Shown in pieces: positions 1 through 64,000 of a stretch of 64,000 nucleotides of DNA (position 1 is its first letter; each line of letters opens with the position of its first letter). The notes beneath the pieces are model-generated. The model made no database searches. It had not been told where the DNA came from and saw only the letters and a program-made list of their open reading frames with translations. This stretch comes from Bispira polyomma (lineage: Eukaryota). A program made the translations under genes and the position numbers. The stretch spans positions 53,196,001 to 53,260,000 of the forward strand of contig OZ287752.1 of NCBI GenBank assembly GCA_965649765.1, written 5' to 3'.

Positions 1-2248
1 CCAAATGGTATGCTATATATTGTAGAAAGTCTAGAAATTTCCATAGCTGATTGTGGGCCTATAATGGCTAATGTACTAAACACATTATCAGTGAAGGAAA
101 TTAAACATGCCAATAATTCATTCTACTTTTACAAGAAAGATCTGCAATGTATTAAAAGCAATGGTAAATATTTCACTAGTCATATTGAGAGGATTATTGA
201 TTCCTTGATTGAAGATTTTGATAATGTAACGCATGTTTGTAACAATGTCAGCGACATGAAGGCAGACATCACACATGGTACAGTCAGGGACACTGGCGGC
301 ATACAAGGTAAAATGTATGTTCACCGTGGTTCAGTCATAAACCCTTCTTCTTCTGAAAACTTTACTGAAATGATTCACACTGACAATACTAGCAATCAGG
401 CAAGCTACGGACTACAATGACAAAAGTAAGGAAGTTGGGTTTATAGCACTTTCACCCACCAAGTAAGTTACTTACTTTAGGGTTATTTTGACGAGTTATT
501 GATTCAATACATTACATTTGGCTTTCCCCTGTCAATAATGAACCAAACAATATCAGGAATGCTAAAGTCGAAAATCACTTTTTAGCTTTATAACATCCTA
601 AGTCAGTGAGTGAATATCTACAAAAAGAAATGTCCCTTGGGGCAATGTTGGGCCCTAGCAAAGATATCAACAATACTCATTACAATTGCTCTCCACTTTT
701 AACTAGGCCCAAGGATAAAACAAAACGTCGGGTAATTTTAAATCTTTCTCACCCATCTGGGGCTTCACTCAATAATAATGTCAACAAAGGGAAATTCTAC
801 AAGGTAGCCTTTACTTTAAAATTTCCAACTGAGAACGCAGTCTTATTTAAAATTGTCGTTTCGCGGGCGTCCCACAACTTGAGGGTCGACCGGATCGACG
901 CTGTCAAACTGGGGATATTCTGGGATGATGCTTACTACATTGATCCGGGAATTGCGTTTGGGTGGGTTCATGGCAGGGCAGGGTTTCAGTGCTGCACGGA
1001 CGCCATTACGTCACCTATGATGAAACAAGGTTTCCGAACATTCGGGTATATCGATGACTACATATGTGTGGCCCCTAAAAGCATAGCGCAGAAATGATTT
1101 GAAATTTTACATCGGCTCATGACAGAACTTGGCCTCCCCATGAATCTGGACAAATTAACTCCTCCAACAACCAAATTGACATGTCTGGGCATCGATTTTG
1201 ATATGGATAAGGGAACCATTTTAATTCAACCAGATAAGTTAACTTTAAAACATATAAGTGGAAAAACAGGCTAAGCAGTATATATATAAAAAAAGTTTTA
1301 GTTGTTATTGAGCAAACTGCTATATATCCATAAATGCATCCTCCCTGCTAGAATTTTCATTAACAGGCTGTTGAATTTCGGGCCAATCATACAGTTAACC
1401 ATTTTAAAGTAACTGTTGACATGAAAAATGACCTACGGTGGTTCATACGTTTCCTACAGAAATTCAATGGCATTACATACATTTTACATGACGTTATCCC
1501 CTTTGGCGAAGAATTACACCTGGACGCCTGTGAAGTATGTGCCACACCGTTCTATGACATTTTCAATGGTGAACTTACCATACACCTAGAAATGCTCAAC
1601 ATAATTATCGTGTTAAAAGCCTGGGCGGAACAGTTGAGACACAAAAAAATGAGCATCAATTTCGACAATATGGCTATGGTTTTGATAAAAAACTAGAGAC
1701 AAATTCCTTGCGTTATATCTTAGAAATATTTGGCTTATTACAGCGACATATGACATAAGACTAAGCATAAAGCACATTCCTGGTAAAAAGAATAACATTG
1801 CAGATGCTTTATCTAGAATTTATTCAAACAAAGACCTTTGTAGTGCAACTTTAGAAACTATCGTCAATAACTATATTTGGAATTTAGTTCCTCTCAAATA
1901 TTATAAGCTTAATTTATCTATTTAATAGCAGGTGACTTGTTAAGGCTGCCTTAGAGAAGGTTCTCACACACATTGGATTACAATATAGGTTCCATTGTTT
2001 TCACACATTTAGGAGGTCTGGGACAACCTTCGCTTTCAACCATAATGTATCCTTACAGAACATACTGGCACATGGTCTTTGGAGGTCTTTCTCAGTCTGG
2101 TCCTACCTTTAAAAACCTCTTAGGCTGTCTCCATAGTTTCCCTCACCTTTGCCTTTGCCATCTCTTCCTCCCTTTAGTTTGGCTTGGGGCTTTAAGCATT
2201 TAAAGCATTTTTATTAACTATCTAACTGTTAAATGTACATATAGAGAA

Positions 2249-3130
2249 ACTAATATGTAAATAATAACACCTCAAACAGAATCTTTCCATTACCTGTGTT
2301 ACACTACATATCATCTTACCAAAAAAATTATTAAATAATATCAACTTGACCCTGGCCAATATCACCTTTAAACTTGACACTACCTTGGGGACTGTGGTAA
2401 GCAGGACACCTTTAGGGCACTGCTACATCAGTCCACAGGTTAATACTTCTGTATAACCTTAAAACATTTATTTTGACTAGACTACTTTTATGCTGACCTT
2501 CTGTCAATCCACACTTCAACCAATCACAGCACAAGCTATTTAATTATGTTCCCGCTATTTTAAGCTTCCATATTGAAACTTGAATTTGAAGCAACAACAA
2601 GTACATTGTATTTTTCCCACCTACTCCCCTTCACCTCAGCTATCATGAAGTTGCCAGTATTTGAAAGTTATTAGATAAAAAAAATTGTGACAAATGTAGC
2701 AATGAATTTGCAGCGTCTCTCAGAATCCTATAGGGATTGCTGATGGCAGAGATGCACAACCATCACGTCTTGAGACATGACTTATGTTATGTTAAATTAA
2801 AGTATTTGAAAAATTGCCTTGGTAGCCAGAGCCTATAGCCCGTGTGGAAGATCCTGTCTCCTAAACTCCTTCTGAGCTACAAGTCTAGGGGTCAGGGTTG
2901 AATAGGAGCTCTGCGAGGCTGGTCCCTTTGCTAGGCGATTAGGTGCCCCAGGTCTTGAGTTTCTTGCACCAGGATAAAGTTTAAATAACGACACTAATAT
3001 GTAAATAATAAAACCTCAAACGGAATCTTTTCATTACCTGTGTTACACTGCAATCATCTACCAATAATATTAATATCAACTTGACCCTGGTCAATATCAT
3101 CTTCGAACTTGACACTACCTTGGGGACTGT
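2249..3130 (+). repeat. E1 3' split direct repeats: B1 2249-2395, A2 plus spacer 2396-2992, B2 2993-3130
   Basis: Two ~140-bp direct copies beginning actaatatgtaaataata and ending cttggggactgt. Confidence 0.85.
2820..2965 (+). ncRNA. Candidate structured RNA in E1 A2-B2 spacer
   Basis: Shares tcagggttSaatag...ctg...gctaggcgattaggtgcc..aggt with the E2 spacer; stems gatcc-t-gtctc/gaggc-t-ggtc and ctcct/aggag. Confidence 0.5.
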
Positions 3131-9729: not shown

Positions 9730-12700
9730 GTAAGGAATTCATTCATACATTAAGTAATGCTTAATAATAAAGAAATATGTATGTATAAGTTTAGATTTTG
9801 TAGAACTTGTAACTTGTACAAAATAAGCTGTACAAGTTAAGACTTGTGTGCAGAATTTATCAACACAGACATTTGTCATTAACTATAATAATATTCATAA
9901 TGCTCTGAACTGATGATATCTATTTAATTTTTATCATATTAATGATATCTATTTAATTTTTATCATATTAATGAAATTAATGTTTATCTTTAGATGTATA
10001 AGATAACATAACAATGACTGTTTCACTGGAAGTACAAAGGTTAAAGAGAAATATACATTCTACTTGATGTACGTCGTTATATATCTTAAAAGTATGTCAG
10101 TCATTTACAGAAAAAATCATAATTTGTTAGTTTATGCTAGGGGCTACTCCTTCAATAAATGTATAACGAATTAAACTTCATGTTTGTTTTTCTGATGAAT
10201 AATATAATAAAAAAGTATAGCTATGTTATAATTGATAAGTTTGTTCACATTTATTACAATCGTTCCATATTAATATGTAACTGTCTCTCACCTGTTAGGA
10301 CAATACATAAGTTGTAATGGTATTTGGGAAAATATTTATTTACCAGTGGTTTATATTATAAATATGAGTTCTTTTCTAGAACTCATTTTCTCTTCTAAAA
10401 TTCCAATGAAATGGTCAACACTAGTAACCGGGAACATGTTAGTTGGCTTGCATTTATTTTATATATATAACACTTAATGGTCAAAAATGATATATTATGG
10501 CTTGATTTCAGAACATAATGTTTCATCTGTACAAATATATCAGACAATATATTAATATTTAGGGATTATTACAAACCAAACGATAAAATACTTATTTCAT
10601 TGGCTGGTTTAAAGATTAATAAAGTATATCCAAAGGTATTCAAAACAAGTGTACTATTGGTTTGTGACAGAAACCAGTATAATGGATGAGAATTTTTTGA
10701 TTTGCTGTTGTCAAAGCTTTCATACATTTGCTTTATTATGTGTACTCACAAGTGTACTTACAAGTATACGGTTAGCCGACTATTCAAACTGCCAAACCGT
10801 TTTACCTTGAATTGACAAAGTTGTTTCAAGTGTTGTATAACCCAATATGTACAATATAATTAACACATAATCTTGACCTACCAATGTAAAATATCACATT
10901 TAACAGAAATAATCATGTTTAATTTAGTTTTAAAATTAAATTATATTGGACAACCGTCAGCTTTACCATTTGCTGGTTATACATGGAAACCACTAACTTA
11001 AAGAGACTTAGCGGAATAACCTTGATGCTCAATGTTTTGTATTAATGACTTAATTTGTATTACTTGGCTTATTTTCAGTATTAGGTAGCCCTCAGTTTGA
11101 TTATATATAAAACCAGCATGTATATATATATATATATATAAGCTACACAAGCTTATTCTAATACTGTTTTGTGTAATTACTTCCAACAAGGTTGTGTTGG
11201 GGGAGATATGCACTCTACTGGGTGCTTTATAATTGATATTTGTCATGATCCAGCAATATATATATATATATTTGTTGTGTCACTTCGTAGACGATCTAAT
11301 AATTAACTGTTTCCTATACAAGCTTATTCTAACAATCTTTTGTGTTTTAAAAGTTGTACAAGTAAACAACCCTTACATGGTGTAAAACCTATTGGACCCT
11401 GACAAAGGAGGCCTTTATCCAAAATAAACTTTCTAGATTCACTTCCTTATTATTATGTAAAGTGAGTTTTCATATATTATCTTCATTTTAAATGAATGGT
11501 GTATGTGTTTCTGCTTATTTCAAATGTATACGGTTGTGTATGTTTATCCAGACAAAGATTGTTGACATGATGACTTGCTCGATGTTGAGAGCCCCTCCAA
11601 AATGAGATTTTAAAATGTACCCATACTATAAAAACAAGTGTAAAGCCCACGTATGCGGACATAGTTAACATATAAAGAATAGACTAATATTCTAAAATAG
11701 TAATGGGACTAGTCCGAAATAATCATGTTAATTAAGTGCTAAGTAGCAGTACCTTTGACAGTTCATGATATAACTTCACACCCAAAAGTCTGGTATGATG
11801 CACTAATAATTATAATAATCACAATCACTGACATCATTCACCCTCACATTCATCAGTGTGCCATTAAGTGTAGCATTGGAACCCGTAACCTATGGCACCT
11901 AATCGCCTAGCGCAGAGGGGGTTCTGTCCCACAGCGCTTCTATTGAACCCTGAGTCCCCACAGAGGAAAGATTGAACGACAGAATCCTATCTCAACATTG
12001 TCCCGGGGTCAAATACTACCCAGAGTGTGAGTTACCGACACTATAGCAAATGCAAAGCCACATGCACCTGAGGTGCCAAGTATAATACTAAGGCATGTCA
12101 AACGTTTGAAATATAAAAAGTACAAAATGTTAGTTAAACACAATTTTTATACTGGAGGAAGAAACGGGGATGGGGGTGGGAATTTTCATAACATGGGTGT
12201 TTACCTTTGGAATATCTTTTCCAAAATGGAGAATGTTTGGGGGAGTGCCCACGCTAGTTTATGTGGGTCTAGTTACTAATTGTTTGCACAATTAATTAGG
12301 GATTGAAATTTTTCTGGAACAAGAATAGTTTTACAAAAGTGAAATTGGACAGGAGGTCAACTGAGGCATCAGTCCCCTAAAGTGGACTGCTGGGCACAGT
12401 TGCCAGGTTAAGTGGAATTGTTAGTTGTGAGGTGACCTTGAGAAGTAAACTACAAGATACCATTAGGAGATTTACTTATATACAGGAATTAGTATATATG
12501 TACAGAGTATAAAAGTAGGTTAAAATTTTAGGGTAAGAAACTTTAAAATGTACCGAAACCCAATCAAACGGAGGAAGGGATAATGGAAGAGAAGGTGGCA
12601 CGGAATGATAGAAGCTGCCTACGCAAGGCTGAACTACGCCATAAACCATGTGACATTATATTTTGGAGAGAAACGTTATTATTAAATGCCAGAGTGGCTC

Positions 12701-15700
12701 CAGATCTGTGAAATGTGTGGAAACCATAAATTTTCTGGTCAATGCCAATGTGTCGTAGGATGTTCCTAAGGACTGTCCTAATGTGTGAATGTAAGATGGG
12801 ATGGTGAGGAGATACTAAAGTAACAAATAAGGGGTAGTGTTCTGAAAGTTTTCTTGATCCAATAAATAGTCGAAGTGCTGTGACTGGACATAAGAGAGGG
12901 ATGTCAATCTTTGGGAGCTGAACTACGTGTGAGGAAGACCAATAGGCATGTTTTGGCCTATTTGAGAATTATGTGTGTCCCTGGTGGGCCAAAGACAACG
13001 TCTTGTCTAAGCAGATGTCTAGTTGAATCAAAATTAAGTCTGGAGTGGGGGGCAATATTTGACATTCGTAGGAAGCCATAAAAGGCTACCAGAAAAATGG
13101 CCCGGTAAAGCTGAGGGTCTGAGGAAATGCTACAAGCCTGAGATATTTGTAGTAATTGCTTGATTTGAAACACCCCTTTGACTGCAGGTCTAAAGGTAGA
13201 GTTTAAAGCAAGACTGTGTGTGAAAAGTGATATAGAATTGTGCTGGAATACATATGTATCCAGGTGGTATTTTTCAGCCATGAATTTCAGTGCTGAAATA
13301 TAATTGTTTATGACTTTTGGTGAAATGTTATTTTGAGTTAAACACTCCCAAAAAAGGTAAAATGGAGTGAATTGCATTATACTGCAAGAAAGAAAGAAAT
13401 GTTCTAAATTGACCAACATAAGCTGGGGTAGTTGAAGGTCTCAAATCTGAATTGATCCTTGAAATGGCTGCTAGCCCTAGCTGTTCTGATGAAGCAGTAG
13501 CACCTGAAATTAGATAATATAATTAAGGTTAAAGAAGTCTAACGGGACTGGTTTACAAATGTACTTACTAAGAGATTGCATTATATCTGCTCTAGGTGGG
13601 TTATTTGAATACATACACAAAACAGCGTCTGCATATACGTTCTCTTTATCCTTAATGTGTTGTATTGTAAAAGTTATGTACGGTGTAGAAGTAATGAGCC
13701 AAATGTTCCTTATACAAGTGGCGAGGAATGAGTCCCTCGTCTTGCTGTTTGTATGACCAATACCACAGCCATGTTGTCGCAGTTAAAAAATACCTTTTGG
13801 TGAGCCCAATCCTTACCCCAAACTCTTTAGGCGATAACGATGTTAAGCATCTCTAGCTTAGTTTTGGCCAACTGTTGTTGATATATGTTGTAGATAGGGG
13901 AATGGTAAACTTCAGAACCCCAAATTGCTCCAAGTCCTGTAAGGCAGGCATCTAGGTGTAGTTCTTGTCCTGATTTAATGCCCACTGGGTCAATATATGT
14001 GATTCCGTTGTAGGTTACTAGAAATTTTATAAACCAGTCTAAGTCCATTTTAATGTTGTCCGTGACCTTAAACCTTTTAGCGTTAGGTGAAGCTCTGAAT
14101 ACCGATAAAAGTTTGTTAATAAAGCACCTGGCTGGTCTTACAGATTTGTGAACGTAAACTACCTAAATTAGATTGAAATTTGCTACATGAGAGCCGTGAT
14201 TTGCTTCTTGCCTCTACACAAACGTTGTAAATTTTAAGTTGTCAGGGGCGTTGACCTTATCCTGGTTCATTGGAAGACTTGAATTGTAAGTAAGCTGTTA
14301 TCAACCAGCTGTTTAACACAAATTGTCATTATCCTGTTTTACAATTTCATAATTTATATCATGGATCAACTCAGTATAATCACAACCCCTAGTTTCACTA
14401 CATATCAGGTCCCTCCTGTGGTTGAAATATGTATTTTTTGCCTTAAGTACTTCCAGTACTGATGATGTATACACACTATGCATTTTATGCAGATACTTTT
14501 CCAGTGTTTGATTCCTAATGACCCTAATAAGGAAACATATTGCCAATATGGTTGTACATATATGTTCTAGTATTATTATCAAAAGAAATGTAACAGAAAC
14601 CTGACATGTCTTGAAAGTCAGGAAATTTCAAATATACCACTGGGTGGTTCTGATTCTCCTTAATCACGTGATAATCAATTACTGCTAATTCACATGTAAT
14701 AATCGACACTTCATTATAAAAAGTAACGCAAGTATTATCCTTATCAGTTTGCTTGGCTGCCAGACTTGACTTTTTGTGTCATTATGCACCCCTGCAGTGT
14801 CATTTAACATGGCAGTGAGCGGATTGGTATTTACTAAATCATACCATACACACTTGTCATTATCCTGAATCATGTTACACTCATTCACAGCATTACAGTT
14901 GTTATGCACAGTTTTACTATTATTATCTGAAATATGTATATTATTGAAATCGGGTTTCGCCCCTAAAAGTGAGAAATCTGATTGCTGATCATCACTTGCA
15001 GATCTATCATAACATTTCTCTATATTACTAGTTACGTTCATAAAATTGAACACATTAGGCTGTTTTACTTCAATTACACCTTGGTCGTACAGGTGATCCC
15101 TAGCTGGTGGGCAACTTGATGTAATTTGCAAGTTTTGATGAATTGGCATTAGCACATTTGAATTCTGGGTGGTTGCTGTCTTTGTTTAGTACGCGATGAC
15201 AATGACTGCAAATGTGCCTATACTGGCTGTGGTCATTTTCATGGCTACATGTACCGTTATTGTAGTATTTGCAGACCGTTTTTAGTTTCTGGGATTGCTG
15301 AGTTACCTTAGCAGTCTCACAAGAGAGCTGGTGGTAAATACTGGTCAAAATAGTATACTTGTATCTAGAGATTTTGACCTTTATTTGGAAGTAAAGATGA
15401 AGTGGTAGTGATATGTTGGATGTTGGAAAATCTGATGCTAGTTTGAAGAATTTTTATTTACAAATAATTTTTGTACAACTATACAAAAGTTTTAAAATAT
15501 ATGATTTTTAAAACTTTAACAGGCCATACGGCTTACTTGTAAGGCAAAAAAACCCATAAAATATAAACTAATAAGCGGCAAACCTTGTAACGTTAAGGTA
15601 GTCATCAAACAATCCCACAATATACGCGGGTTCTGTACATGTAATCATAAAATGTAACTAGTGTAATAAAGGATAAATCTTCTAACATTAAAGTAGTCCT

Positions 15701-18700
15701 CAAATAACATAATCCCACAGTATACGCAGGTTCTAACAACTGTAAACCTAGTATAGTTCACACTTTAAACCTGTTCATCTCAAAAGAAGTTACAACAAGT
15801 GTTCAAACATGATCCAAGCAATAAATCAATACATAAACTTGAATCATGCAATCCAAACAAGGATGGACTCGAAATCGGAACCTGTGGCACCAACACACCT
15901 AGCAATGGCCAATCCTTCCCCACAGAGGTCCGAATTCCTTTGACAGCCACGCCAAGGGCAAGTATATGGAGGAAAGGATTGCACCACTACACGGTTCCAA
16001 CGTCGAATCCGCCCAAGTCTGAGTTGCATGATTTTTAAAGAAGCAAATGATACCACTAAACACAGGGAGGGTGGGTGAGGTTAATTTTTAAAACATGTAT
16101 ACCCTTTGGCTGTGGGTTTAATAATGAAGAGAAAGATAAATAGACGGGGTGTGTTTATTGAACCCTAACGACCCTGAATGCATATTGGTCGCTAGGAAGG
16201 GTACAGTAAAGTGGCTAATTTGTGCGACTGACAAGACATGCCTTGAGGCAGTGACTCAGACAGTCTCACAAGATAGCTGGTGGTGAATATTGGTCAAAAT
16301 AGTATACTTGTGTCTAGAGATTTTGACCTTTATTTGGAAGTAAAGATGAAGTGGTAGTGATATGTTGGATGTTGGAAAATCTGATGCTAGTTTGGAGAAT
16401 TTTTATTTACAGATAATTTTTGTACAACTATACAAAAGTTTTAAAATATATGATTTTTAAAACTTTAACAGGCCAAAAAAAAACCCCAAAAATTTAGAGG
16501 GAAGGAGGATTGATAGCAGCGAAGGTTTCAGGAATAATTGAAGCTGCATGGGAAGTGGATTCTAAATAAGTCCAAATAGCATCTGATTTCCAACAACCAT
16601 GTTTTTGAATATTTTGAAGTTCAATGTTATTATTGAAGGCAAAGGAAGCACCAGATCTACGAAAGCAATGAAAAGAATGTCCAGAATGAGGAATGCTAAT
16701 CTGTGATAATATATTCTTAAGAGTAACTCTTAATTTTGTCTCAGTAAGACATTTGCCCCCAATTCTGGGATCAGCCAATAATGGAGCATGAGGTGAATTT
16801 GGATATTTAGAGAGTCTTTGCAGCCCTGACAGGGCAAAGCCAAGGATTTTTTAAAACTGGTAATTGAATTATATTCTGGTGCTGCCTGGTTTGATTTGTT
16901 TTAGACCATTTGAGAATCATATGAATGCCCGGTAGTGAAAATATAATGTCTGACCTTGTCAAATGTCCAGTAGAGTCAAACTCGAAATCCTCAAAAAACC
17001 AAAGAAGGCAAATAAAAAGGCTGTCCTGTATAATCCAGGAAAATCTAATAACTGACATTGACGCAAAATGCTATGCAATTGTGAGATGTCAAAAATGCCT
17101 TTTGGTTTAGGCTGAAATGTACAATTGATCATCAGTGACCTCTGATACAATGCAATTCTTTGATCATAAAGTTGAGAACTTTGAATATTGAAACTCTTTT
17201 CATAATATCTGATGGCAGCCAAGTAGTTGTTAATAACTTTGTAAGAAGAACCTGACTGATGTAAGTATTCCATGAAAGCTAAGACTGAGCTTAAAGTAAA
17301 AGTGTCTTCAAGGTTATAATAAATTATGAAAGCAAGAAAAAGACTCAGTTGACTGTCGTATTGTCATGTCCTTCTGGGTCTCAGGTTGTTTGCCATCTTT
17401 TTCATTGCCCCTTTCAGCAAAAGCTTGGCAGCTTCTGATGTCCCTAAAATTAAAAGTCATTTTTTAAGAAAAAGTGTGCTAAAGGAACTTTGCACATATC
17501 TAGTCTGCTAGTCATTAAATCCTTAATCTCACTTGTAAACTGTCCCAAATTATGCCATCTAGACAAGGTATCTGCAAGAATATTGTTTTTACCAGCAATA
17601 TGATCAATCTTAATATCAATATTATAATTTGCACAAATTAGCCATAAATTTCTCAAGCAAGTTGCCAACATTGAATCTTTAGTTTTTGACGACTTTATAA
17701 CAGACACTACAGCAATGTTGTCTGACTGTATGCGAATCCGTGAATCACGCCATTTATCAGCCCATAACCAAAAAACTACAAGTACACTTAGCATTTTGAA
17801 ATACACAATCGAATAGTCTTCTCTCATCCAATATGGTATTGGTGCTGTGAAAGCGTTTGCCTGTGAAATTCCTCCTATTCCTTGTAAGCAAGCATCGACT
17901 TGTAAGGAAACATTTTTAACAGAGTGTTTGTATTCATAAGTCATACTTCCGTTGAAACTAATCAAAAATTTATTGAACCAGTTTAAGTCCTTCTTAAACT
18001 CATCATTCAAAATTACATGTTTGGAACTGGTTGAATCTCTTAAAAGTTTAAGCATCCTGTTAAGAAAAATTCTAGATGGTTTAATGCATTTATGAATATA
18101 GAAAAGTTTACCAAACAACGACTGGTACTTGTTTTTCTTAACCTTTTACAAATTTCTGAAGTCTAAGCAAACTTTATGAATTTACAGTAATTTCTCTTCG
18201 TCTATACTTAAAGTGCCCTTTTCTATATCAATCGTGATACCCATGCATGTTACTCTGGTATCAGGGGGAACTAGTTTTTTCTGATTAATAGGTAAACCGA
18301 TATCATTCAGCACTTTCTGTAATAATTCGTATGCTAAGGTGGCCTTAGCTTTAGTTTCAATGATAATAAAGTCGTCGATGCAGTTGTATACTTTATATCC
18401 ATTTTGTTTTAAGATATAGGTAACTCTATCCGAAACTTGATTTGTAACCTAATTTCAAGCTATCATAAGGATCAACTCTCAAATTTCGGAAAGCGTGCGA
18501 AACGTCCACCTTTGCTAGTCTGGCATCTTTACCTATACTCTTAATGTCTTCAACTATTTGGTCTATAGTTGGTAATTTTAAAATAAAACTAAGGTCGTCA
18601 TATTTCTGCTTATAAGTAAAGTCATTGACAGATAGTCCTGCTGGGTAAGAAAGATTTAAGATTAAATGTCTTTGGTCCTCTCCTTCGGGAACTGTCAATA

Positions 18701-21700
18701 AAGGAGAACAATGAAATTCTTCTGTTAAGTCATTTTTAGACACAGTAATGATATTGCCCTTGTCTGTTTCTTCTACGAAATACCTGTCAATGTACTCAGG
18801 AAAAGCATTAGCAGAAAAATGATTGTCGATGTGCTTAACATCTAATGTGTCTTTCATGTAAAGAAATAGGAAAACCAAATTCTAGGTAATCCAGAACAAT
18901 CTTATCGTCATAGTCCTTTAAGTAAATTTTCCAAGGTTCTAAGTTAAGTCCTGAAACTAGAGGGGCACGAACTTCTCTGTAATTTGGTTTTCCTGTAGCC
19001 TTACTATGTCACTTACTCGAGTTAAAGTCTGGAAATCCTTAATGTCCACAGGCTCTCTGTCTGGTCCTATAAAGGAAAAATTTGACTTATGTGTAGATAT
19101 AAAACCATACTGTCTACTACCGTTATCCATAGACTTAATGTCGTCTTTCTTATCACTAGTACAGTCCAGAGTCAGCTCAGCCCTATCCAATTCTTGTGCA
19201 AGTACAGCCAATGTAGAAGAAGTATAATGACATGTCGTGGATTCTGAAACTTGACCTTGGAAAGAACATACTGAATCAAGTTTCTGACTTAATGAGTATT
19301 TTTGATGTTGTATTGTCTGTTTGTGTGCATCTGTATCAGGACGTTGAAACTGTTCTGTTGTTTCTAGCTTTTCTGTGTACAAAGTACAACGACCTGTAGT
19401 AGCAATTTCTGTATGTGAAGTATCAATATCTATTGTGTTACACATCTTATTAATCATATCTATATAGTATTGAGTACTGTGTACTTTCAATTCAGTATGT
19501 GATGTCTTCACTTTTTTGTTAGCATTACTGTTAAGATAAAGTTTTTCAATGTCTCTGTTAACGCTGACAATGTATACCATTGCCGAAGTAACAAAATTCA
19601 CTGGCCATATATCTGCCAATGTAATACAGGTATCCTTTAATACAAGGTTGCCACCTAAAATTTGACCTTGAAACACACCTTTTATATTTGGGTTAAGTTT
19701 GTCAATGACATAATAAATATTTTGATGAGTACTAGTGTTCTCACTTAAGTACACATCTGCATATGTCAGATATGAATTGGTGCTGACATTATTGTGAGTA
19801 TATATTACATCTTCAAAATTACACACAACAGGCTCATTCAAAGAAAATTCTGCAAATTTAAGAACATTATGATTTCTCTGAAACTTATTATCTATAATGA
19901 ACTTGTTCAAAGTACTTTCTGAAAATTCATGGACATTATGATTTAGTGAAAAATCATACGTCATAATGTCCTCAATTTTGGAATCTGAAAAAACGTTAGA
20001 ATAAACACGTTGGGGCATATAATTAAACATTCCAGTAGTTGAAACATTACATCTAGTACTATTCCGATTGTTATCTGGAATTATTTCACTGGTACTTATA
20101 TCTGTATTACCAGATGAAAAATATTCGTCTGTCACATCAGTAGATAATATGTTTAGCTTATCTAAAGTAAAAATTTCATTGTTTATCTTGCCAAACTCAC
20201 ATTTACAGTCCAAAATATAGTCACTACTCCTGGAAAATTCAGAAGTCTCATGATACAATTTCTTCAATTTATCTAAACTAGAAATTTCATTATTCGTCTT
20301 TCTAAAAACACATTTACTTTCTAAACTTAAGTCACTACTCCGGTAAAAATCACTAATCTCATTATGCCTTTCAAAATTGCTAACAATACCAACACTGCCT
20401 GTAACTGTCAGTCATCTCCTGTCCTATTGTCCCTGTCCCTGTGTGGTGGTAAGATTCGGTTTTCCGTGCAATTTGAAACATTTCATTTCCGGATGGACAT
20501 TCTCTATTCTGCTTGTATGAAAGCAATTAGCACAGATGTGCTTAAAAACTGTAGTCGCGTTCTCATGATCTGCATCCTGGTGACATTGGTTCCGCTGGTA
20601 ATGACTACAGGGAATCCGAGACTTGGGTTCCTGTGCTAAAAGTGCTGTGCGAAGTACCAATTGTGATGTTAGATGAGAGAAGAGCTTGAGAGTACAACAA
20701 GCGGTTCATTGTCCACTTGGTTTCGTCCAACCAAGTAAGTCGACCTTCTTCCATATCTGTCATATTCGTCACGTACGCGCCTCTGGCTACAGCCCATGAA
20801 ATGTTAGATGCATCCCTCAATGTGTCCCCTAGTTGTTTAAACATGGCCTGGGAAAAGTGAGTGTTTTTTACTTCTAAAATGTTCTGGATTTGACCAGCAG
20901 CAAACTGCGCTACTGTCAAATCGTCAAAGGAAACCCTCTTTTTGTTAATACCTGATAAGCAACCTTCATTCGGCCATCTGAATAAAGGGTTGGCAGTACA
21001 TGTGTCGGCTACATTATAACGTCCGGATTTTCTTTTTAAAAGGGACTTACCCTGTAAAAGTTGTTGAGCTGCTGCTGATTCGTACTGCTGTAGACGAGGC
21101 GAGACCTCATTCTGAATTAAAGCAGAATGCCTTAAAACGTCTGTTGTAGGCAGAATATCATTCTGTGAGACGCTAGACGAGTGAAACTGTGACACGGGTG
21201 GAAGTGGAGAAACGAACTGTCCCCCTGCTGATACTGAAGGTGTAGCTACCGAAGTGGTGCTGTTCCCAAATGCATTTTCAACTACATTCGACCTCTTCTT
21301 CACGACGGAAATGGGACGCGAAACTGCTCCTGGTATCTGATCAGACAAGTCAACTGTATTTTCTGTGAAATTAACTTGAGAACTGTTACCTTGTGACTTC
21401 AATTCTTCCACATCTTTCTGCAACTTCGTGACTAAGTGAAGTAACGTGTCCATCATGAACTGTTGTTTCGAAAACTTCTGTGCTCTTATTTGTCTTAACC
21501 ATAACAGTGTGAACTAATATGTGGAAAACAAAAATCACCTATTTTCTTACAAAAACAAATAAAAACTCATTCAAACCTTTTCCACAATATATAATAATGG
21601 ATATACTATCGTCTTTTGTTAAAACAAATGTAAAATATGTAAACTAAAAGCACTAAAATGATGTTTAATATATTTTTTCATATAAAATCCAATATGGCGG

Positions 21701-24700
21701 CGTTTAAAACGTATATCGCCTGCCTGCTGTTTTAATTTTTAAAACGTGTATACCCTTTGGCTGTGGGTTTAATAATGAAGAGAAAGAGAAATAGACGGGG
21801 CGTGTGTATTGAACCCTAACGACCCTGAATGCATATTGGTCGCTAGGAAGGTTACAGTAAAGTGGCTAATTTGTGCGACTGACAAGACATGCCTTGAGGG
21901 AGTGACTCCGAAATTTGCGAACACTAGCTGGGAAGTGCTAAGCCTGTTTAAATCCCATGTGCAGTGTTATCCCACTTTAACCATCCCTCCTCCACGTCCT
22001 GCATGTTTAGCGCTCATGCAGATCTGCCAGCCGGCCAGGGGAGGGAGGCTGCATCCCTTAAGGAAGTAAATTACCTGGTTAAGCATCTGTCGCATAACTT
22101 TATTGTTGGACACTTGATCAATGTTAAATAGTTGGCCAGCAGCCCACTGGGTAAGTGTTAACTCATCATACTGGGGGCGCTTTCGTGCCGTTCCACCGAC
22201 CCAGCCTTTGTTGGCCTAGCAAGACTGTGGGTCAACATTGCAGATATCAGTGGTATTAAATCTGCCAGATTTCTGACGCGGGGATGGCTTTCCTTGGGAG
22301 AAGTCCTGACAAAGCTGTACATCATAAACAGCTAATCTCTGGTTAACCGAGACCGCGCACTCTGGTATCGACTTTAGGACTTTCTGTAGAAGTTTACTTC
22401 TTTAAAGGCACACTACTTGACGTCCTGTAGAAGTTTTCTTCTTTAAAGGCACACTACTTGGCGTCTTGGTTTGTTTTGTTCTTCCCATAGTGTATAATAA
22501 GAACTAGTATAGTTAAAATCCCATCTAAAAACAAATAAACTCTTAAATATCACAGTTAATTCAATTTTCATAAAATGGATGTTTACCCTTGGAATATCTT
22601 TTCCAAAATGGAGAATGTGGGGGGGGGGGGGGAGTGCCCACGCTAGTTCATGGGGGTCTTGTAATTGGTGGCATAATTAATCAGGGATGGGAAATTTTCT
22701 GGAGCAAGAATAGTATGACAAAAGTGAAATTGGACAGGAGGTCAACTGAGGCATCAGTCCCCTAAAGTAGACTGCGGGGTACACTAGCCAACAAATGTTT
22801 GTGGTACATTAATTAGAAATATATTTCTTGACTTAAATATCAACTTTATGATATGTATTTAGTAAAATCAATTACATTTCAATGTAGAGAAAACATCCTT
22901 TTCATTACATTTGAGTGTAATTCAATTTTAGTCTGCTACCCGAAATTCAAACTAAAATGCAAGTTATGAAAATAGAAATTGATTTTTCCTACACATCCTG
23001 TGTGACATTGTGCATTTTCCCCTTTTAAATAAAAACTGTATCTTGTTAATGTTAATTTAAGTAATTAAACCAAGTCTTCGGTTACATAATGTTTTTCATG
23101 TCAATGCATAAATACTTCAACCTAGTTATAGGGGTGGTTACTTAATATGTATCAAAGGCTGTAGCTGAAAATATCAAGGCTATTTTAGTCATGAATCAGA
23201 ATTTTTTTGTGTCACCTCCTAGATGATCTAATAATTAACTGTTTTCTTGGCACCAGTCTTCTGCCTGTCTGAACTTAAACAGATCTGATATGTAACAGCA
23301 TTCCATAATTAGTACATAAAATTGAAAAACTTACATATTTTTTCATATGTTTAATACAGAACAACAATCATTATTTCTGGAAATGCCGTGGACAGAGCTC
23401 TACAGTGACTTGGATGAGTGATGATCTGACACAGTAACAAGATAAAGCTCAGGAATATTAGTTTATTCTAGTTTTAGTTCTACATTATATACATACTACA
23501 ACGGCTAAGGCCACCATATGAGAAAAGGGTGATCTTAATTTAAGTATCATCTAAACTCGAGTTTAAGGTTATAGTAAGGTTACCTCTAAGTTTAAGGTAA
23601 TCTTAACTTGCTTGATGCCTTTTCCAAGTCTGAGGTAACCTTTACCTGAGTTTAAATTTTTGGAATAAGTTTTATGAGTTAAGGTGGCCTTAGCCTAAAT
23701 TACATTGGATTTGTATTTTTATTTATATGCATTGATAATAATAAATAGCACCAAATCCAATTACGAGGTTGTGTTTGAAAGAAGAGACTGAAAAGCGAAG
23801 GCAACTTGATCTGAAGCTTGATGATCTCTGGTCACATATTTCCAGACACAATCAGAGGTCCATGTACCATGGCTCTGGATATCCTGAAGCGATACCTAAT
23901 TATTGAAGGCCAGAGTTGCCCCAGAACGTCCACCCTGGCCAGCTCTTCTGGTGCGGTGTAAGACGCTACTGTATGAGGGACCAAGTTTGAAATACAAAGG
24001 AAAGAAAAGAATGCTAGCAGATAAGCTGCCTTATATAACTGGCTTATAAACATTATAAACATAAAATTTGTAATCCTAATACTATTTATTGGTATGAAAC
24101 CCCCATAAATATTCATACCAGGGAAACCATAAATCTCCCCACCAGTGAACATATATATATTTTGAACGCATTATGTTCATGAAACCAATTTCTTTGGGCG
24201 TATTGTGGATAGAATATACACCATAATATTCTCTTTATTAATCCCAAAAGGTCAATAAATTGTCTGACTCCTCTAAACACATTACCTCAAAGGAGGATTC
24301 CATGACTCAAACGGAGGAAGCCATGGATCTGCCGGAGGCAACCGGAGGCAGTTTTAGTACTTCAAGGAAAAATTATAATCATTTATCAGCCTCTAATGAG
24401 ATTATCCATAAGATTATCGAAATATATATCAACAATAAAAGATATATATAAGGCATTTTGTTGGAGAAACAAATCTTCTCTCACACATAACACTTTATCT
24501 CTATATCTACTGGGTCATTATTAGTGTGAGTGATACTGCCCTGAGCACTGCTCTGAACCACTTAGAAGTGGACAATAACACATCGTTCAACACTCCAGCC
24601 ACAGGCACCCCAATCCCAGCTACCATGCTGAGCAGTTAAACACTTAACCTATTGGAAGAAGTGTCCATGAAACTGACCAAGCCTGAACATAAACCAAAGG

Positions 24701-48149: not shown

Positions 48150-51100
48150 AGGTTTTTTTTTTATTTAGGGTCAAACAAGACCGAGCAACAGGGTAAAGCG
48201 AAGCGGATCCAGTGTAAAGGGAAAGTGTAAAGGCCCCATACCCATACCCATATGGGACCATACCCGCCATCCCATATACACGCACCACAGGAACCAAAGT
48301 CAACCTTAACTGACCTCACACGACTAGTACCAGAGGGATGGCATTATATCCAAAGTAGACATCTTAAACTCACGTCCCGAGTGACAGTGGTGTTTAATCA
48401 GCAAATAGCTTCAATGCATACTTAAAAAGCAAACTTACCCAAGGTAGGCCACTCCTACAACAAACGTTGGGTTGCTATAACACAACAAACATTGCTAATG
48501 TGGATCCACAACTCAGATGGCCCAATGAGGCGTATCTGGTTGTAAATTACTCACATTTGACAATATGTCACTACCACAATAGGCAGTCTGGTAGTTATTC
48601 ATCATTGCACAAGTGCAAGATCAGACATTGCTCAAGCTAATTACTAAGCTGATGCTAAATCAGGCGATTCACTCACTGGGGGCCTTCTTCTTTACCATGG
48701 CTATCAGTTAGAGCTGCTTTGACAGCAAACATTCAGGAGGTGGAGGAGGGGTAGCTTCACTAAAGCGATGCAACGCAATGGACGTTGAAGAACATAAACG
48801 TTTCTCAGCTAACGCTAATAGCCAACAGGCTTGGCCGACTCATAAAGTCAAACCAGTGTGTAGGTAAGATAACCTAGGCAAATGCCACCAGGAGATCACA
48901 GGTAATATCAACACTTTTTCTCTTATTGTCATAGAGTTCTCAATAATGATGTATCTCATCTGGCGGTCTAATGCGAAAGAAGTAATTCATCAAAGCAGCA
49001 GAATCAGAGTGTACAAATTATGTAGTGATAATCCAGATCAGTTTAAATGTAACAACATAATAACCAGTGAAAGTCTGAATAACGATATATGTTCCCTGAA
49101 CGATTTTTTCCAGAACACTTCTGTAAATTCTATAAACAAACATGTCATACATGAGGACATTATTTATTGTAATGTATTGGTGCATAATGATAACCAATTG
49201 CATAAGGAATATTGCAGAAATGTTGAAACGGTAAATAATGTATAGAATGTAGACAATTACCATTATGCTAACAATGATAATGTTACAACAAATAATAGTT
49301 TAAACTATACAGCTACAATGTCTGTATGCAACATGTAATGTGAAGACAGCTACGGAACTTGAAAACATTGTGTATTTTAATGTGCATGACTTTCCATGGG
49401 CTTCTGGTTTCTGTTACCAAGGATATGACTGTATTAATGGCACTTATTGGTTTGGTCCATGTACTCAAATATCTAATAAATTTTGCAAATTATTTATGTC
49501 ACAGAAGGGGCTATTATAATAGACCCTACTTAGTGAGCCTATAACCAATATATTGTAACCCCAAAACAACACGCCAATTCAGTCTATTATTACTATAGCA
49601 GAGTGCAGTGATACCCATAGCGGTGATTATACAGAGTATATCGAAAATATTTATTGATAAAATGATCAAAGTGAGAAAGTGATATTCATGAGGTCAGTCA
49701 TAATGAACACCATATCCAACACTAATGTCAAAGTTTGTAATGCTAATGTCAATATTCCACCCGTCCGTTCTTAATAACAGGGCACCGGGTGGGTGGGCGA
49801 CCACAATGGTCACCTTGATACTACAAACTATACAAGTATTACTGAGAATTACACAAGTTGAACCACTTTTACCAAAAATAAGGCTGTAGATATTCATGAC
49901 AAGTCAAAAGAAATAGGCTTTATTAAGCTCTCAGATGTCAACTATAAGTAAATTGGTACAGATAGGGAACCTGTAGCTATCACTAATGTCAGGGACATAC
50001 TACAAATAGCACAAACAATTAGAAAGACAGGATCAATTATAGATCTGCTAGAGAACCAATAAGTTATGGCCTCAATGTTAAGGCTTGGAAAGACATTCTT
50101 AAGGACCACCATGATAAACTAATACATAAAATAAAAACTACTACATAACATTAAGGCCACTAACCATAACTCTACCATGCAATACCCCAAATAGGTGTTA
50201 AACTATCTTGAAAAGGAAAAGTATCAGGGTGCCATATTGGGACCAGTTAGCAACATATACTTCCATGCCGCCCCCTGTTAACAAAGCCTAAGGACAGCAA
50301 TAAGAGTAGGATTATTTTAGACCTGTCATTCCCACACGACTAACTGTTAACAGTTGAACTGTTAAGATTCCCTACTAAAGAGCACATTATGGAAGAAAGT
50401 AAGATAACTATGCCTTCATCTGTACTAAAGATAAGGCAAATAAGGCCTATGCCTTCCTTCATGACTAAGTTCTGAAAGATGGCCTCTTCGTAAATGACGA
50501 CAAATCAGTTTCATCAGCCAATACTACTACATTCTTAGGTATAGACATAAATATTAAAGATGGCACAATCAGTATTATTCACAAAATACCAATCCAGTTC
50601 AAGAATACTCATATACATCCAAAAGTGTGTAAAGCCGGCCAGAATCTTCAACAATAGGCTTTGACCTGTCTTTAGAGACAATCCTCATGCCAAAAGATTT
50701 TAAATCACAAACAACATCAGGCAGGATTTATCCTGGTTCAACTCCTTTCTTCCGCGTCACAATAGCATTACCTACATATCTCCTAAGGACATTGATCACA
50801 TGCAAGAATTTCACCTGTATGCTTGCATTGACAGGTTTTGGCGTCATTTGGAATGATGAAGTGTATGACACTCCCATATACAACAGTTATAACTACAAAT
50901 TAGCCATTAGACAACTGGAAATGCTAAATATTATTAGAGCGTTATGGGGTAAGGACTGGGCCCACCAGAGAGTCAATGTTGTGTGACAATCTGGCCGTGG
51001 TGTTACTTGTTGACACTGGTAAAACAAGAGATCCTTTCCTTGCAACTTGAATAATGAATATATTTCTACTCATTTCCACATTAGACATTACTTTATGTTT

Positions 51101-51850
51101 TAAGCACATTAGGATAAAGCTAAACATTAAGGCAGACACGTTATCACACATATCACACGTATACATTCTGGTAACCCACCTAATGCATCTTTAAAGTCTT
51201 GAGTAAATAGCACTAGAGAAATGTTCCTACAATATCTATAACTGTAAGATAGCATTGCACAATTAGAAATCCTGAATATTATCATAGCTGTAAGGCTTGG
51301 GGACAAAGACTGGGCCCACCAGCGAGTCACAGTGAGGTATGACAATTTAGCCGTGGTGTTAGTTGTTGACACAGGCAAAACTAAGGATAATTTTCTAGCT
51401 ACATGCATCAAGAATATATGGTTACTAACAACTTTTGATATTACTTTTGATATTACTTTGCACATAGAGTACATTAGGGGCAAACATATATATTCCTGTA
51501 AACCATCTACTGGCCAAATAATGAAAGAACGGACCCAATGTTGTTGTTAGAACATACCATTTGATTTTTTTTCAACAAAAACAATACTATTTAATTGTAG
51601 GTTTCCCCCTCATCCACCATACACCTAGGTAGACATTTTTGTCATTTCTACATTATTCAGGCTTGCAGCAGGTCACAGTTTCCTCAGTGTCAACATTTCT
51701 AGAGTACCTAGCTCAAAACAACATTTCACCTGGAGTAGAAAATAACTACATGGCTGCACTAAAATTCATGTTTGTCAAATACAACTTAGACCTACAACCA
51801 CTCACACATAGCTCCATCTCACTGGTCTGTCGTAGTCTTGTAATATTTCT
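48150..51850 (+). mobile_element. E5: heavily decayed DIRS-order element with a duplicated RNase H segment
   Basis: Gag DPQLRWPNE..LPWLSVRAA..QEVEEG; pre-RT IGTDREP; RNase H copies ~50880-51140 and ~51230-51490; YR start FLEYLAQNNISP..NNYMAALKF. Confidence 0.82.
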
Positions 51851-56221: not shown

Positions 56222-56565
56222 TATTTGGAATTCTAATTATGTATTTGGAATTCCGAATAGCGTATTTAGAATTCTAAATATATATTTGGAATTCCAAATA
56301 GAGTATTAGAATTTTAAATACCTTTTTAGAATTCCAAATAGGGTATTTAGAATTCTAAATATGTATTTGGAATTCCAAATAGGGTATTTAGAATTCCAAA
56401 TACGTATTTGAAATTCCAAATAGGGTATTTAGAATTCCAAATAGCTTATTTGGAATTCGAAATACATATTTAGAATTCCAAATATGAATTTAGAGTTCCG
56501 AATATGTATTTAGAATTCCAAATACTTGTTTAGAATTCCAAATACAGTATTTTGAATTTTGAATT
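56222..56565. repeat. Minisatellite of ~17 palindromic 18-mers (consensus tatttRgaattccaaata) with 2-3 bp spacers
   Basis: tatttggaattccaaata is a perfect palindrome; period mostly alternates between 20 and 21 bp. Confidence 0.92.
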
Positions 56566-56589
56566 TGGTTGGTAGTTCTAGGCTTTTGT

Positions 56590-63000: not shown

Positions 63001-64000
63001 GTTTTGAACTGAAGGACAGAGCCTGCTGGGGTAATTTTGACTTGTAGACTGATATGCATAACACACAGATGTTTTATCTATTCTCAAATATTAGGCTTGA
63101 ACTTGATAAAAAATACTGTAGCACCCTAGCCTAAATGATCTAATAGCATTTCTACATGGTTGTTTCATCACATAAAAAACATTCATGGTTACTGGATTTG
63201 CAAACTCAGTTTTATTTTTCTACTTCATTTATATAATGTACTTTGAATAATTAATTGGTCTGGTGCATACAACATAAACTTTGCCAGAATTTTTTTTATT
63301 TTTTTTAAATTGTGTTATCTTTATTGCAAGCTGATCAAAAATCCATGTATATATTTCAAGCCTTCTATCTGGTGTTTTTAGTGTATCCATCCTTGTTGTT
63401 AATAGTGAGTGTGAAATTCTCAGTATCAACTTTACTGTAACAAGTGGCAATGATGTGGTTGTTCAAAATGTTATTTAAAGTGGTCAAAGACATCAGCTGG
63501 TAATTGAATGTTCAAACGGCATATATTTCAACAGAGAAAATAACATTCATATACAAAATAGACCCCACCAATATGTATTAATACTCACACCACATATTTT
63601 TTGTGACCTTGTCATTAGGATTTTACTCTTGTTTGCAGAAAGTCAAGCTCACTGATAACGACCCAGGTTATGTTGTAGAACTATAAGTTTTAATTATCAA
63701 GCACCTTAGAGGATGATATAGCATGACACAATTGGTATTCAATAATAATAATATTCGTATAAGCGCATTTGAAATGTTATTACTACATATAAATCGCGTT
63801 ATATCAAATATATATGTTATGTTATGTTATTGAGACCATAAAAAGTGCCAGCCAATAAAAATTTCTTTAAAATATCCATCCTCTCTTTAAGCGTGTGTAT
63901 ACGTGTTTGATAATGGTAAATAGTTGTACCTTTTTTATATATCTTATACCCTGGTCCCACCGGCCGTCACGTTAGGAGTCGTGTGAAAATTAATTTGCAT

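Follow-up and report, generated by a model that had tools for sequence, protein, structure and literature searches.

A rod-like, covarying RNA structure in the A2-B2 spacer of Ngaro-type tyrosine recombinase retrotransposons of Bispira polyomma

A rod-like RNA structure occupies a fixed position in a number of diverged families of tyrosine recombinase (YR) retrotransposons of Bispira polyomma and, as evidenced by aligned copies, is maintained between families by compensatory changes. It was found in a window of 64,000 nucleotides (contig OZ287752.1, positions 53,196,001 to 53,260,000; assembly GCA_965649765.1), for which a sequence-only reading had proposed that three diverged YR retrotransposons, here called E1, E2, and E3, carry a conserved sense-strand RNA-type structure at the same position; our analysis supports that proposal. 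We consider it very probable that this rod is an RNA structure under selection on the sense strand and that it acts in cis. Our best explanation, held with about even confidence, is that the rod is a cis-acting structured RNA of one Ngaro-type group that selects full-length RNA as a template. As a defined, strand-specific motif supported by covariation and detected by a covariance model, the rod gives binding, probing, and end-mapping studies a concrete target.

The host elements share with Ngaro-type YR retrotransposons the order of their open reading frames (ORFs), namely, gag-like, RT/RNase H, and YR, as well as the repeat arrangement A1-ORFs-B1-A2-spacer-B2. Split direct repeats of this kind (A1 ... 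B1-A2 ... B2) were found in E3 and in four other families, and the tyrosine recombinase ORF lies downstream of RT/RNase H, as evidenced by the ORF order in tblastn. The parts of E3 and E2 that matter here are as follows.

15312..15526, minus strand: E3 repeat B2, the 3' end of the element (genomic copies stop at 15312; AATAAA on the sense strand)
15527..16080, minus strand: E3 unique spacer S, between A2 and B2 (repeat map; 554 bp)
16081..16260 (about), minus strand: E3 repeat A2, a copy of A1 (direct repeat with 21732-21911; start point of the solo units)
16261..16475, minus strand: E3 repeat B1 (97% identity to 15312-15526)
16497..21456, minus strand: E3 coding region, with gag-like part, RT fragment, RNase H, and tyrosine recombinase (broken in the window copy; ORFs and inter-element tblastn)
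21732..21911 (about), minus strand: E3 repeat A1, the 5' end of the element (direct repeat with A2)
12181..12396, minus strand: E2 repeat A2, which begins at the B/A junction (about 12396/12397; repeats with 22563-22790)

The repeat map bears out the spacer length that had been claimed for E3. E1 is a plus-strand element, with RT, RNase H, and YR in that order at 567-2109 (+) by tblastn. Pfam matches in the window copy of E3 are limited to a weak RVT_3 and a faint Phage_integrase; intact YR ORFs of 329-330 amino acids end in an H-x-x-R ... Y C terminus, YR homologues carry PF00589 or PF13495, and the adjoining pol genes carry PF00078 or PF13456. The lack of a methyltransferase domain is a feature that we take to set Ngaro apart from DIRS and PAT. 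No Pfam match to such a domain was obtained on the E3 ORFs, which are broken, or on homologous pol genes, an absence that constitutes weak evidence. All five families have an AATAAA in mid-B. A conserved, separate inverted repeat marks the B/A junction, and this junction, which is away from the rod, is likely the recombinase site.

Within the E3 spacer, a GC-richer island of ~190 nt had been predicted to fold into seven nested stems, and both its composition (GC content of 0.51 in the rod versus 0.34 in the remaining spacer) and its folding agree with that prediction.

15842..16033, minus strand (element sense): E3 rod, full 192-nt imperfect hairpin (MFE -87.1 kcal/mol, z -5.8)
15859..16011, minus strand: conserved core of the E3 rod (covariance model R1, 123.9 bits, E 1.9e-34; 33 of 35 consensus pairs formed)
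15886..15903, minus strand: most conserved motif, GCTAGGYG-4 nt-GGTGCC (possible 4-bp mini-hairpin at a three-way junction)

The predicted fold has 72 pairs, of which 14 are G-U, and consists of an apical part and seven main nested stems, which measure 10, 6, 3, 8, 9, 8, and 12 bp. None of 200 shuffles equaled the sense strand in energy. The antisense strand of the same interval yielded -68.2 kcal/mol and a z-score of -6.2.

The GCTAGGYG-4 nt-GGTGCC pattern occurs three times in the 64 kb, versus 0.1 expected, at 2930-2947 (+), 11894-11911 (-), and 15886-15903 (-), in each case on the sense strand of its own element. Likewise, the only matches to covariance model R1 in the window are the E1, E2, and E3 rod sites, at 105-124 bits. 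The conserved bases had been described as an unpaired 3' bulge. Their conservation stands, as evidenced by a motif that is near-invariant across 90 genomic copies, but they need not be unpaired, as they can form a mini-hairpin of 4 bp with a 6-nt loop (helix 5), a helix that is conserved without compensatory change and that has conservation as its support.

The sequence-only reading had also placed the same motif at the same position in E1 and E2. The corresponding core copies are as follows.

11867..12017, minus strand: E2 rod core, decayed copy (R1, 108.9 bits; 30 of 35 pairs formed; z -0.6)
2823..2974, plus strand: E1 rod core, decayed copy (R1, 105.1 bits; 30 of 35 pairs formed; z +1.4)

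The placement held, with all three sites on the sense strand, but the E1 and E2 copies in the window fold no better than shuffles (z of +1.4 and -0.6 on the exact match). The 1.04-Gb genome contains at least 150 full-length rod matches; families were sampled at 90 loci of Bispira polyomma, and fold z-scores were calculated for 65 genomic loci. E3-family copies reach z-scores of -5 to -10 on the sense strand, with weaker values on the antisense strand, while E2-like copies reach -3 to -5, and one E1-like copy reaches about -3. The same architecture, 150-200 nt in length, recurs across all families, including the better-preserved genomic copies of the E1 and E2 families. It comprises family-specific basal stems, in which structure is more strongly conserved than sequence; stems of 4 bp (conserved), 5 bp, and 12 bp (central); an apical hairpin beneath an internal loop whose purine-rich bases are conserved; and, on the 3' side, the highly conserved motif at a three-way junction.

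The covariation that had been noticed in the central stem proved real when alignments of 14 and 91 copies were compared with controls in which the pairing partners were slid. Among 14 representative copies, 18 of the 35 consensus pairs show compensatory change. When these copies were aligned by sequence only, 92% of cells pair, versus 37-47% with partners slid, and double changes occur in 19 of 35 pairs, versus 4-9 in the slid controls. The larger alignment likewise exceeds its controls, with 91.3% pairing versus 34-46% and 306 double-change cells versus 49-125 among 91 copies, although the compensatory events are fewer than these cell counts imply because the independent lineages are few (about 5-7 families). 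G·U pairs fill 589 cells versus 92 for A·C, and five pairs have a G·U majority, while none has an A·C majority; this excess argues for selection of the structure on the sense strand. When E1-type units are compared with E2-type units, nothing but the rod (76-80%) and the B/A junction can be aligned, and rod identity in the E1a-E1b comparison is 90%, versus 71-82% for A and B. Judged from these comparisons, the rod is, apart from the B/A junction, the sole noncoding island alignable between families.

Because the element encodes a tyrosine recombinase, a site acting at the level of DNA, as a cruciform or a folded single strand resembling integron attC, would be one use for such a fold. DIRS-1 makes single-stranded cDNA (PMC7192593), and a recombination site could also account for basal stems that conserve structure more than sequence. 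Nevertheless, the element ends are the start of A and the end of B, 200-600 nt from the rod; the conserved inverted repeat is found instead at the B/A junction; and G·U pairs are in excess on the sense strand, but the single-stranded intermediate that is known is cDNA of antisense polarity. We regard a DNA-level site as extremely improbable, and an attC-type recombinase site in particular, whose crossover point would fall inside the hairpin, was rejected, given that the boundaries are at the A start and B end and that the rod is internal.

Searches for known RNAs yielded no identity for the rod. At gathering thresholds, Rfam gave no match in the 64-kb window, and a permissive search of the window, eight loci, and isolated rods returned only subthreshold matches to miRNA-like hairpins (miRNA-precursor models at 12-23 bits, far under their gathering scores). 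These matches and the long imperfect hairpin itself might suggest a substrate for small-RNA biogenesis of the Dicer/Drosha type, serving as a host silencing trigger or an element-encoded regulatory RNA. We judge this very improbable; hairpins in general draw such Rfam matches, miRNA precursors do not feature conserved loops and a three-way junction, and an element's own silencing trigger is not expected to be conserved across diverged families. Rfam also revealed no hammerhead or other ribozyme core and did not uphold a resemblance to the 3' portion of 5S rRNA or to the signal recognition particle (SRP) Alu domain, and ARAGORN detected no tRNA or tRNA-like gene. A tRNA primer-binding site would follow the 5' repeat directly and consist of TGG plus the complement of a tRNA acceptor 3' strand. 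In the E1 and E2 families, the sequence is ..TTAGGTGCC.. and lacks TGG, and the motif lies 220-460 nt past the start of A2; because TGG is missing in these two families, a tRNA primer-binding site was ruled out.

Related elements outside this genome provide a further comparison. Those in ENA ERZ22147071 look intact, and their YR is 50-60% identical; neither they nor one Logan contig gave a match to the rod, with search filters at default or disabled. The spacers of these relatives contain GC-richer islands, with z-scores never below -2.6. Because related elements of another assembly are without a detectable rod, the rod is not a general requirement of the group. A scan of metagenome contigs for the motif gave no match. 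Also, for YR retrotransposons as a whole, no conserved RNA structure is cataloged in Rfam or was found in searchable papers. The searchable Ngaro papers cover the repeats and describe no conserved structured RNA between A2 and B2, and in this respect the present elements differ from Ngaro-type elements as those papers describe them.

Retroviral packaging signals and the RT-recognized 3' untranslated region (UTR) stem-loops of LINEs (R2 and stringent type) are structured RNAs that act in cis in template choice. From sequence layout, we read the rod as located in the 3' untranslated spacer of the full-length transcript, between A2 and B2. With an AATAAA in every family's B, transcripts could end at B1 or at B2. 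The B1-A2 junction, which the standard model requires to rebuild the element ends, would be present only in read-through transcripts, and a signal between A2 and B2 would tag exactly the complete templates. On the basis of the AATAAA in B, the junction expected in read-through RNA alone, and the A2-B2 placement, we propose that the rod may be bound by the element's Gag or RT, such that full-length RNA would be chosen either for packaging or to begin reverse transcription. The logic would be that of a retroviral packaging signal, which is placed where unspliced RNA alone carries it. The rod resembles these signals and the LINE stem-loops in being a structured RNA that acts in cis from an untranslated retroelement segment but has no sequence or Rfam similarity to them. 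Taken by itself, the template-selection role is a tentative suggestion to which we give somewhat less than even weight. Any specific role in RT priming, packaging, or recombinase assistance as a cofactor is conjecture.

Simian type D retroviruses likewise have a rod-like RNA, the constitutive transport element (CTE), downstream of their last gene and before the 3' repeat; its extended stem has two identical internal loops that bind NXF1 and are related by twofold symmetry. By analogy, the rod might be a 3' UTR element that binds host factors for the export, stability, or translation of a long unspliced RNA. Its similar size and its position after the last ORF and before the 3' repeat fit this idea, as do the sense-strand structure with conserved unpaired bases and the restriction to Bispira polyomma families, which could reflect adaptation to the factors of one host. 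However, the CTE's defining pair of symmetric internal loops was not seen. In the rod, the conserved unpaired parts comprise a single apical internal loop and a single junction motif that do not resemble each other, and no Rfam match was obtained. A host-factor role seems to us unlikely.

According to PMC7192593, the primer of YR retrotransposons and their way of choosing an RNA template are unknown. A hairpin that Poulter and Goodwin noted at the 3' end of DIRS-1 mRNA has been proposed to serve in the start of reverse transcription, as cited in that article. The hairpin resembles the rod in lying close to the 3' end of an RNA from a YR retrotransposon, but it is about 14 nt long and at the extreme 3' end, whereas the rod spans 150-200 nt, has a junction and covariation, and is separated from the downstream terminal repeat by 200-600 nt. 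Because of this distance from B2, the rod cannot be the physical start of the first strand unless the 3' spacer is copied otherwise. The RT might still dock on the junction motif of read-through RNA, with the rod as a cis signal for initiation by a non-tRNA primer mechanism, which we think unlikely; if true, the priming step of the DIRS/Ngaro order would become directly testable. That the rod itself primes first-strand cDNA, by self-priming after cleavage or from a protein or 2'-OH, as in hepadnaviral epsilon or retron msr, in which cDNA is covalently begun at or templated by a particular base of the structure, is decidedly improbable. The undefined YR retrotransposon primer, the suggestion made for the DIRS-1 hairpin (PMC7192593), and the conserved unpaired bases that adjoin a helix would suit it, but the 200-600 nt of unique spacer up to B2 would go uncopied, the motif in E1 and E2 is not complementary to a tRNA 3' end, with TGG missing, and neither ARAGORN nor Rfam found a tRNA-like fold.

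Genomic context bears on whether the rod belongs to these elements and on how it spreads. Every rod copy examined sits between A and B, either of an element or of a solo A-spacer-B unit, and a free SINE or MITE, whose copies would lie mostly outside the elements and have their own termini, was thus rejected, with no free-standing rod among the examined copies. It had been suggested that A2-spacer-B2 is a second transcription unit, in which A2 would drive a noncoding RNA ending in B2 that serves in trans as an RT primer, packaging partner, or recombinase cofactor. Both the ORFs and the spacer have an A before them and a B after them, B carries an AATAAA, and solo A-spacer-B units and a tandem array of them exist, all of which would be expected of such a unit. 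Nevertheless, the solo units, which account for about half of the copies, are interspersed on the tree among full-length copies and enriched among the oldest, a pattern that points to products of recombination, not to separate propagation. We find a second unit decidedly improbable, and the tree gives no support to a separate nonautonomous lineage of solo units. Instead, a solo unit looks like the 3' module left by recombination between A1 and A2. Solo long terminal repeats (LTRs) are similarly scattered among full copies and enriched among old ones, but A-spacer-B is a 3' module and not a terminal repeat. The rod can also serve as an annotation marker for both these elements and their solo remnants.

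The window is a piece of a 1.04-Gb eukaryotic genome and contains a cluster of tyrosine-recombinase (YR) retrotransposons, including three diverged Ngaro-type elements, E1, E2, and E3, with the layout A1-ORFs-B1-A2-spacer-B2.

Mapped parts of E1, E2, and E3
21732-21911 and about 16081-16260, minus strand: E3 repeat A (A1 and A2), from the repeat map
16261-16475 and 15312-15526, minus strand: E3 repeat B (B1 and B2), from the repeat map
Between A1 and B1, minus strand: broken E3 frames (gag-like, RT, RNase H, YR), from ORFs and protein comparison
15527-16080, minus strand: unique E3 A2-B2 spacer, 554 bp, from the repeat map
14162-12570 and 22347-21880, minus strand: E2 ORF remains, from ORF comparison
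12181-12396 and 22563-22790, minus strand: E2 repeats A2 and A1, from the repeat map
567-2109, plus strand: E1 RT, RNase H, and YR, from ORF comparison
2232-2395 and 2976-3130, plus strand: E1 repeats, from the repeat map

E2 (11300-22790) hosts E3 (15312-21911) as a nested insertion, with E2 A1 (22563-22790) and gag-like remains (21880-22347) upstream of the insertion and E2 RNase H and YR remains (12570-14162), A2, and the rod, an imperfect hairpin in the spacer, downstream. Pfam matches in the decayed window copy are weak (RVT_3, E 0.0012; Phage_integrase, E 0.25). The element type is settled by sister copies, which carry intact 329-330-aa YR frames, and by homologues in another assembly, which adjoin RVT_1/RVT_3 pol genes and upstream ORFs of 418-425 aa.

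On the element sense strand, E3 15842-16033 folds into a 72-bp rod (-87.1 kcal/mol, z -5.8) with seven main nested stems and 14 G-U pairs; the antisense strand gives -68.2 and z -6.2. GC content is 0.51 in the rod versus 0.34 in the remaining spacer. Against an expectation of 0.1, the window has three occurrences of GCTAGGYG-4 nt-GGTGCC, the conserved motif, one in each of E1, E2, and E3 and always on the element sense strand. The homologous E1 and E2 stretches of the window fold no better than shuffles, and window evidence alone would not settle the claim of a conserved rod. R1, a covariance model of the conserved rod core built from a sequence-only MAFFT alignment of 14 representatives, matches the window at the three known places only; two further elements, at 48431-51845 and 60532-62790, have no match.

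Used as DNA queries against the genome, the three rod stretches yielded 153, 71, and 207 candidates at first look; 90 loci were examined, with alignments built on natural copies throughout. R1 has at least 150 full-length matches in the genome. Across the 90 loci, the motif is near-invariant, with departures that are mostly CpG-type transitions, and the better-kept copies of all families have a single fold architecture in common.

Parts of the shared rod architecture
Basal stems, family-specific
4-bp stem, ACCG with its 3'-side partner GGTY
5-bp stem
12-bp central stem
Apical hairpin that varies in sequence and sits beneath an internal loop holding conserved bases (GGGTTGAATAGRAGC-type)
Conserved motif on the 3' side, with a possible 4-bp mini-hairpin (6-nt loop) at a three-way junction

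On the sense strand, z is -5 to -10 across E3-family copies, -3 to -5 across well-preserved E2-type copies, and about -3 in one E1-type copy. Antisense folding is weaker than sense folding in most copies (in the E3 family, all but L023 and L025). Folding better than shuffles holds for E3 and the better-kept genomic copies and fails for the window copies of E1 and E2.

Covariation supports a selected structure. RNAalifold predicts 35 pairs on the 14-copy alignment, of which 18 show compensatory change. In that alignment, 92.0% of cells pair, and sliding the 3' partners by 1-3 columns lowers this share to 36.6-47.2%. Double changes fall in 19 pairs versus 4-9 after sliding, and the covariation score is 0.444, which 0 of 500 shuffles reach, versus 0.08-0.17; the covariation claimed from the first inspection is thereby borne out. 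Among 91 R1 matches in the loci, whose alignment is fitted to the model, 91.3% of cells pair versus 34-46% slid, and 306 cells show double changes versus 49-125. These copies represent perhaps five to seven lineages, and independent events are far fewer than the cell counts. Helix 5, the mini-hairpin, is conserved without compensatory change, and its pairing is therefore not proven.

Within the 35 pairs there are 589 G·U cells and 92 A·C cells, with G·U in the majority in five pairs and A·C in none. Neutral decay would produce G·U and A·C alike, and a DNA cruciform would tolerate neither; the excess of G·U therefore indicates selection on the element sense strand, which points to RNA. That the rod is a recombinase site acting at the DNA level is exceedingly improbable. 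The rod is an RNA-type structure of the sense strand, under selection and fixed between A2 and B2.

In 39 of the 90 loci, a YR frame lies upstream and the B1/B2 direct repeat flanks the rod. Wherever the remaining loci can be aligned with a reference full copy, their limits coincide exactly with its A start and its B end; these are solo A-spacer-B units, about 900-1450 bp long and lacking ORFs. Such units make up about half of all rod copies (L006, L007, L009, L011, L012, L020-L027, and many E1/E2-type loci). No free-standing rod occurs among the loci examined, and identity as a SINE or MITE, raised in the sequence-only reading, is rejected, as no copy was seen outside an element or solo unit. 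The E3 family comprises 13 full and about 11 solo copies, which intermix on the A-spacer-B tree with six state changes, the oldest branches all being solo. This pattern is expected if solo units originate by A1 x A2 recombination, much as solo LTRs arise by recombination. With solo units scattered among full copies, a second, separately propagating A2-spacer-B2 cassette finds no support, and it is improbable that the rod belongs to a separate RNA driven by A2.

L038 (63-2092) is a B-A-spacer tandem array with a period of 949-950 bp at 98-100% identity and two rods 950 bp apart. In L025 (2058-2154), a near-perfect 97-nt AT-rich hairpin adjoins an E3-type solo unit; it has sub-threshold matches to miRNA-precursor models (mir-1972, 41 bits; gathering 90) and is probably a MITE-type foldback. 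An additional plus-strand element at 60532-63010 has RT, RNase H, and YR, followed after the YR stop by a B-like start (GGGTTTGGGATAT...) that reaches a ...GAACTG end near 63018, with no recognisable A2, rod, or B2 after the B-like stretch. This element may represent an A-ORFs-B form, which B1 x B2 recombination would yield as its reciprocal product.

Beyond this genome, identity to the closest YR proteins of the protein collection is 50-60%. The loci long enough to examine all come from one ENA assembly, ERZ22147071; another hit is a short Logan contig. The ERZ22147071 elements look intact and share the repeat layout of the window elements, and R1 found nothing in them, even with filters off; their spacers hold GC-richer islands only, with z no lower than -2.6. 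For instance, in L091 (4459-4761), from another species, the A2-B2 spacer of a related intact element has a GC-rich, duplicated unit about 165 nt long; its folding is moderate (z -2.5 sense, -1.0 antisense), and it bears no similarity to the rod. On the YR tree, whose forks are weakly supported, the ERZ22147071 clade is placed next to the families of E1 and E2, and E3 falls outside. Because these elements and the two further window elements lack the rod, it belongs to one group of families and not to all Ngaro-type elements.

Only two non-coding stretches can be aligned between E1-type and E2-type units. First, the 3' half of the rod aligns over 70-75 nt at 76-80%; between E1a and E1b, identity is 90% in the rod and 71-82% in A and B. 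Second, 42 nt align across the B|A junction, examined at window 12362-12400 (E2) and in L055, L045, L065, and L086. B always ends in ACTG, and A of the E1 and E2 types opens on a short inverted repeat made up of AGCAGTCC, 8 nt, and GGACTGCT; this repeat has the form expected of a YR core site at the circle junction and is a candidate for one. A sense-strand AATAAA lies mid-B, 70-130 nt before the B end, in five of five families (window 15312-15526 and the same four loci), and may be a poly(A) signal, carried by B1 as well as B2.

In the accepted model, the B1-A2 junction is used to rebuild the element termini. With a poly(A) signal in B, transcripts could end at B1 or B2, and only read-through RNA would hold the junction; a signal in the spacer, where the rod lies, would thus mark exactly the complete templates. 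Element Gag or RT may read the rod, either in packaging or to be recruited to the template, a role that we propose tentatively, at less than even confidence. The selected sense-strand structure might otherwise be a host-factor element acting in export, stability, or translation, which we consider unlikely. That the rod is the priming site itself is distinctly improbable, and awkward given that 200-600 nt of unique spacer separate the rod from B2. According to Malicki et al. 2020 (PMC7192593), the DIRS-1 reverse transcription primer is unknown, and a small 3' hairpin noted by Poulter and Goodwin might prime reverse transcription. The searchable literature describes the split direct repeats but not a structured RNA in the A2-B2 spacer. 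A search of Rfam 15, proposed along with the first description of the rod, returned no matching family, and no tRNA-like gene was found. Small-RNA processing of the rod is very improbable.

Finally, several local features mark the window copies. The E1 rod directly adjoins B2 at 2975-2976, versus about 520-600 nt from rod to B2 in sister copies, so the E1 copy has lost the spacer's 3' portion. E2 B2 starts (GTATGGGTACATTTTAAAATC...) at about 11600-11630, but only its first 25 nt or so follow the family; E2 is truncated or interrupted at this 3' end. Toward its 3' side (15555-15734), the E3 spacer contains an internal tandem duplication, diverged and of about 85 nt, that most family copies share. 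At 56222-56567, a tandem repeat of about 17 units of 20-21 bp contains GAATTC-centred palindromes (TATTTAGAATTCCAAATA-type) and can be read also as nested inverted repeats.
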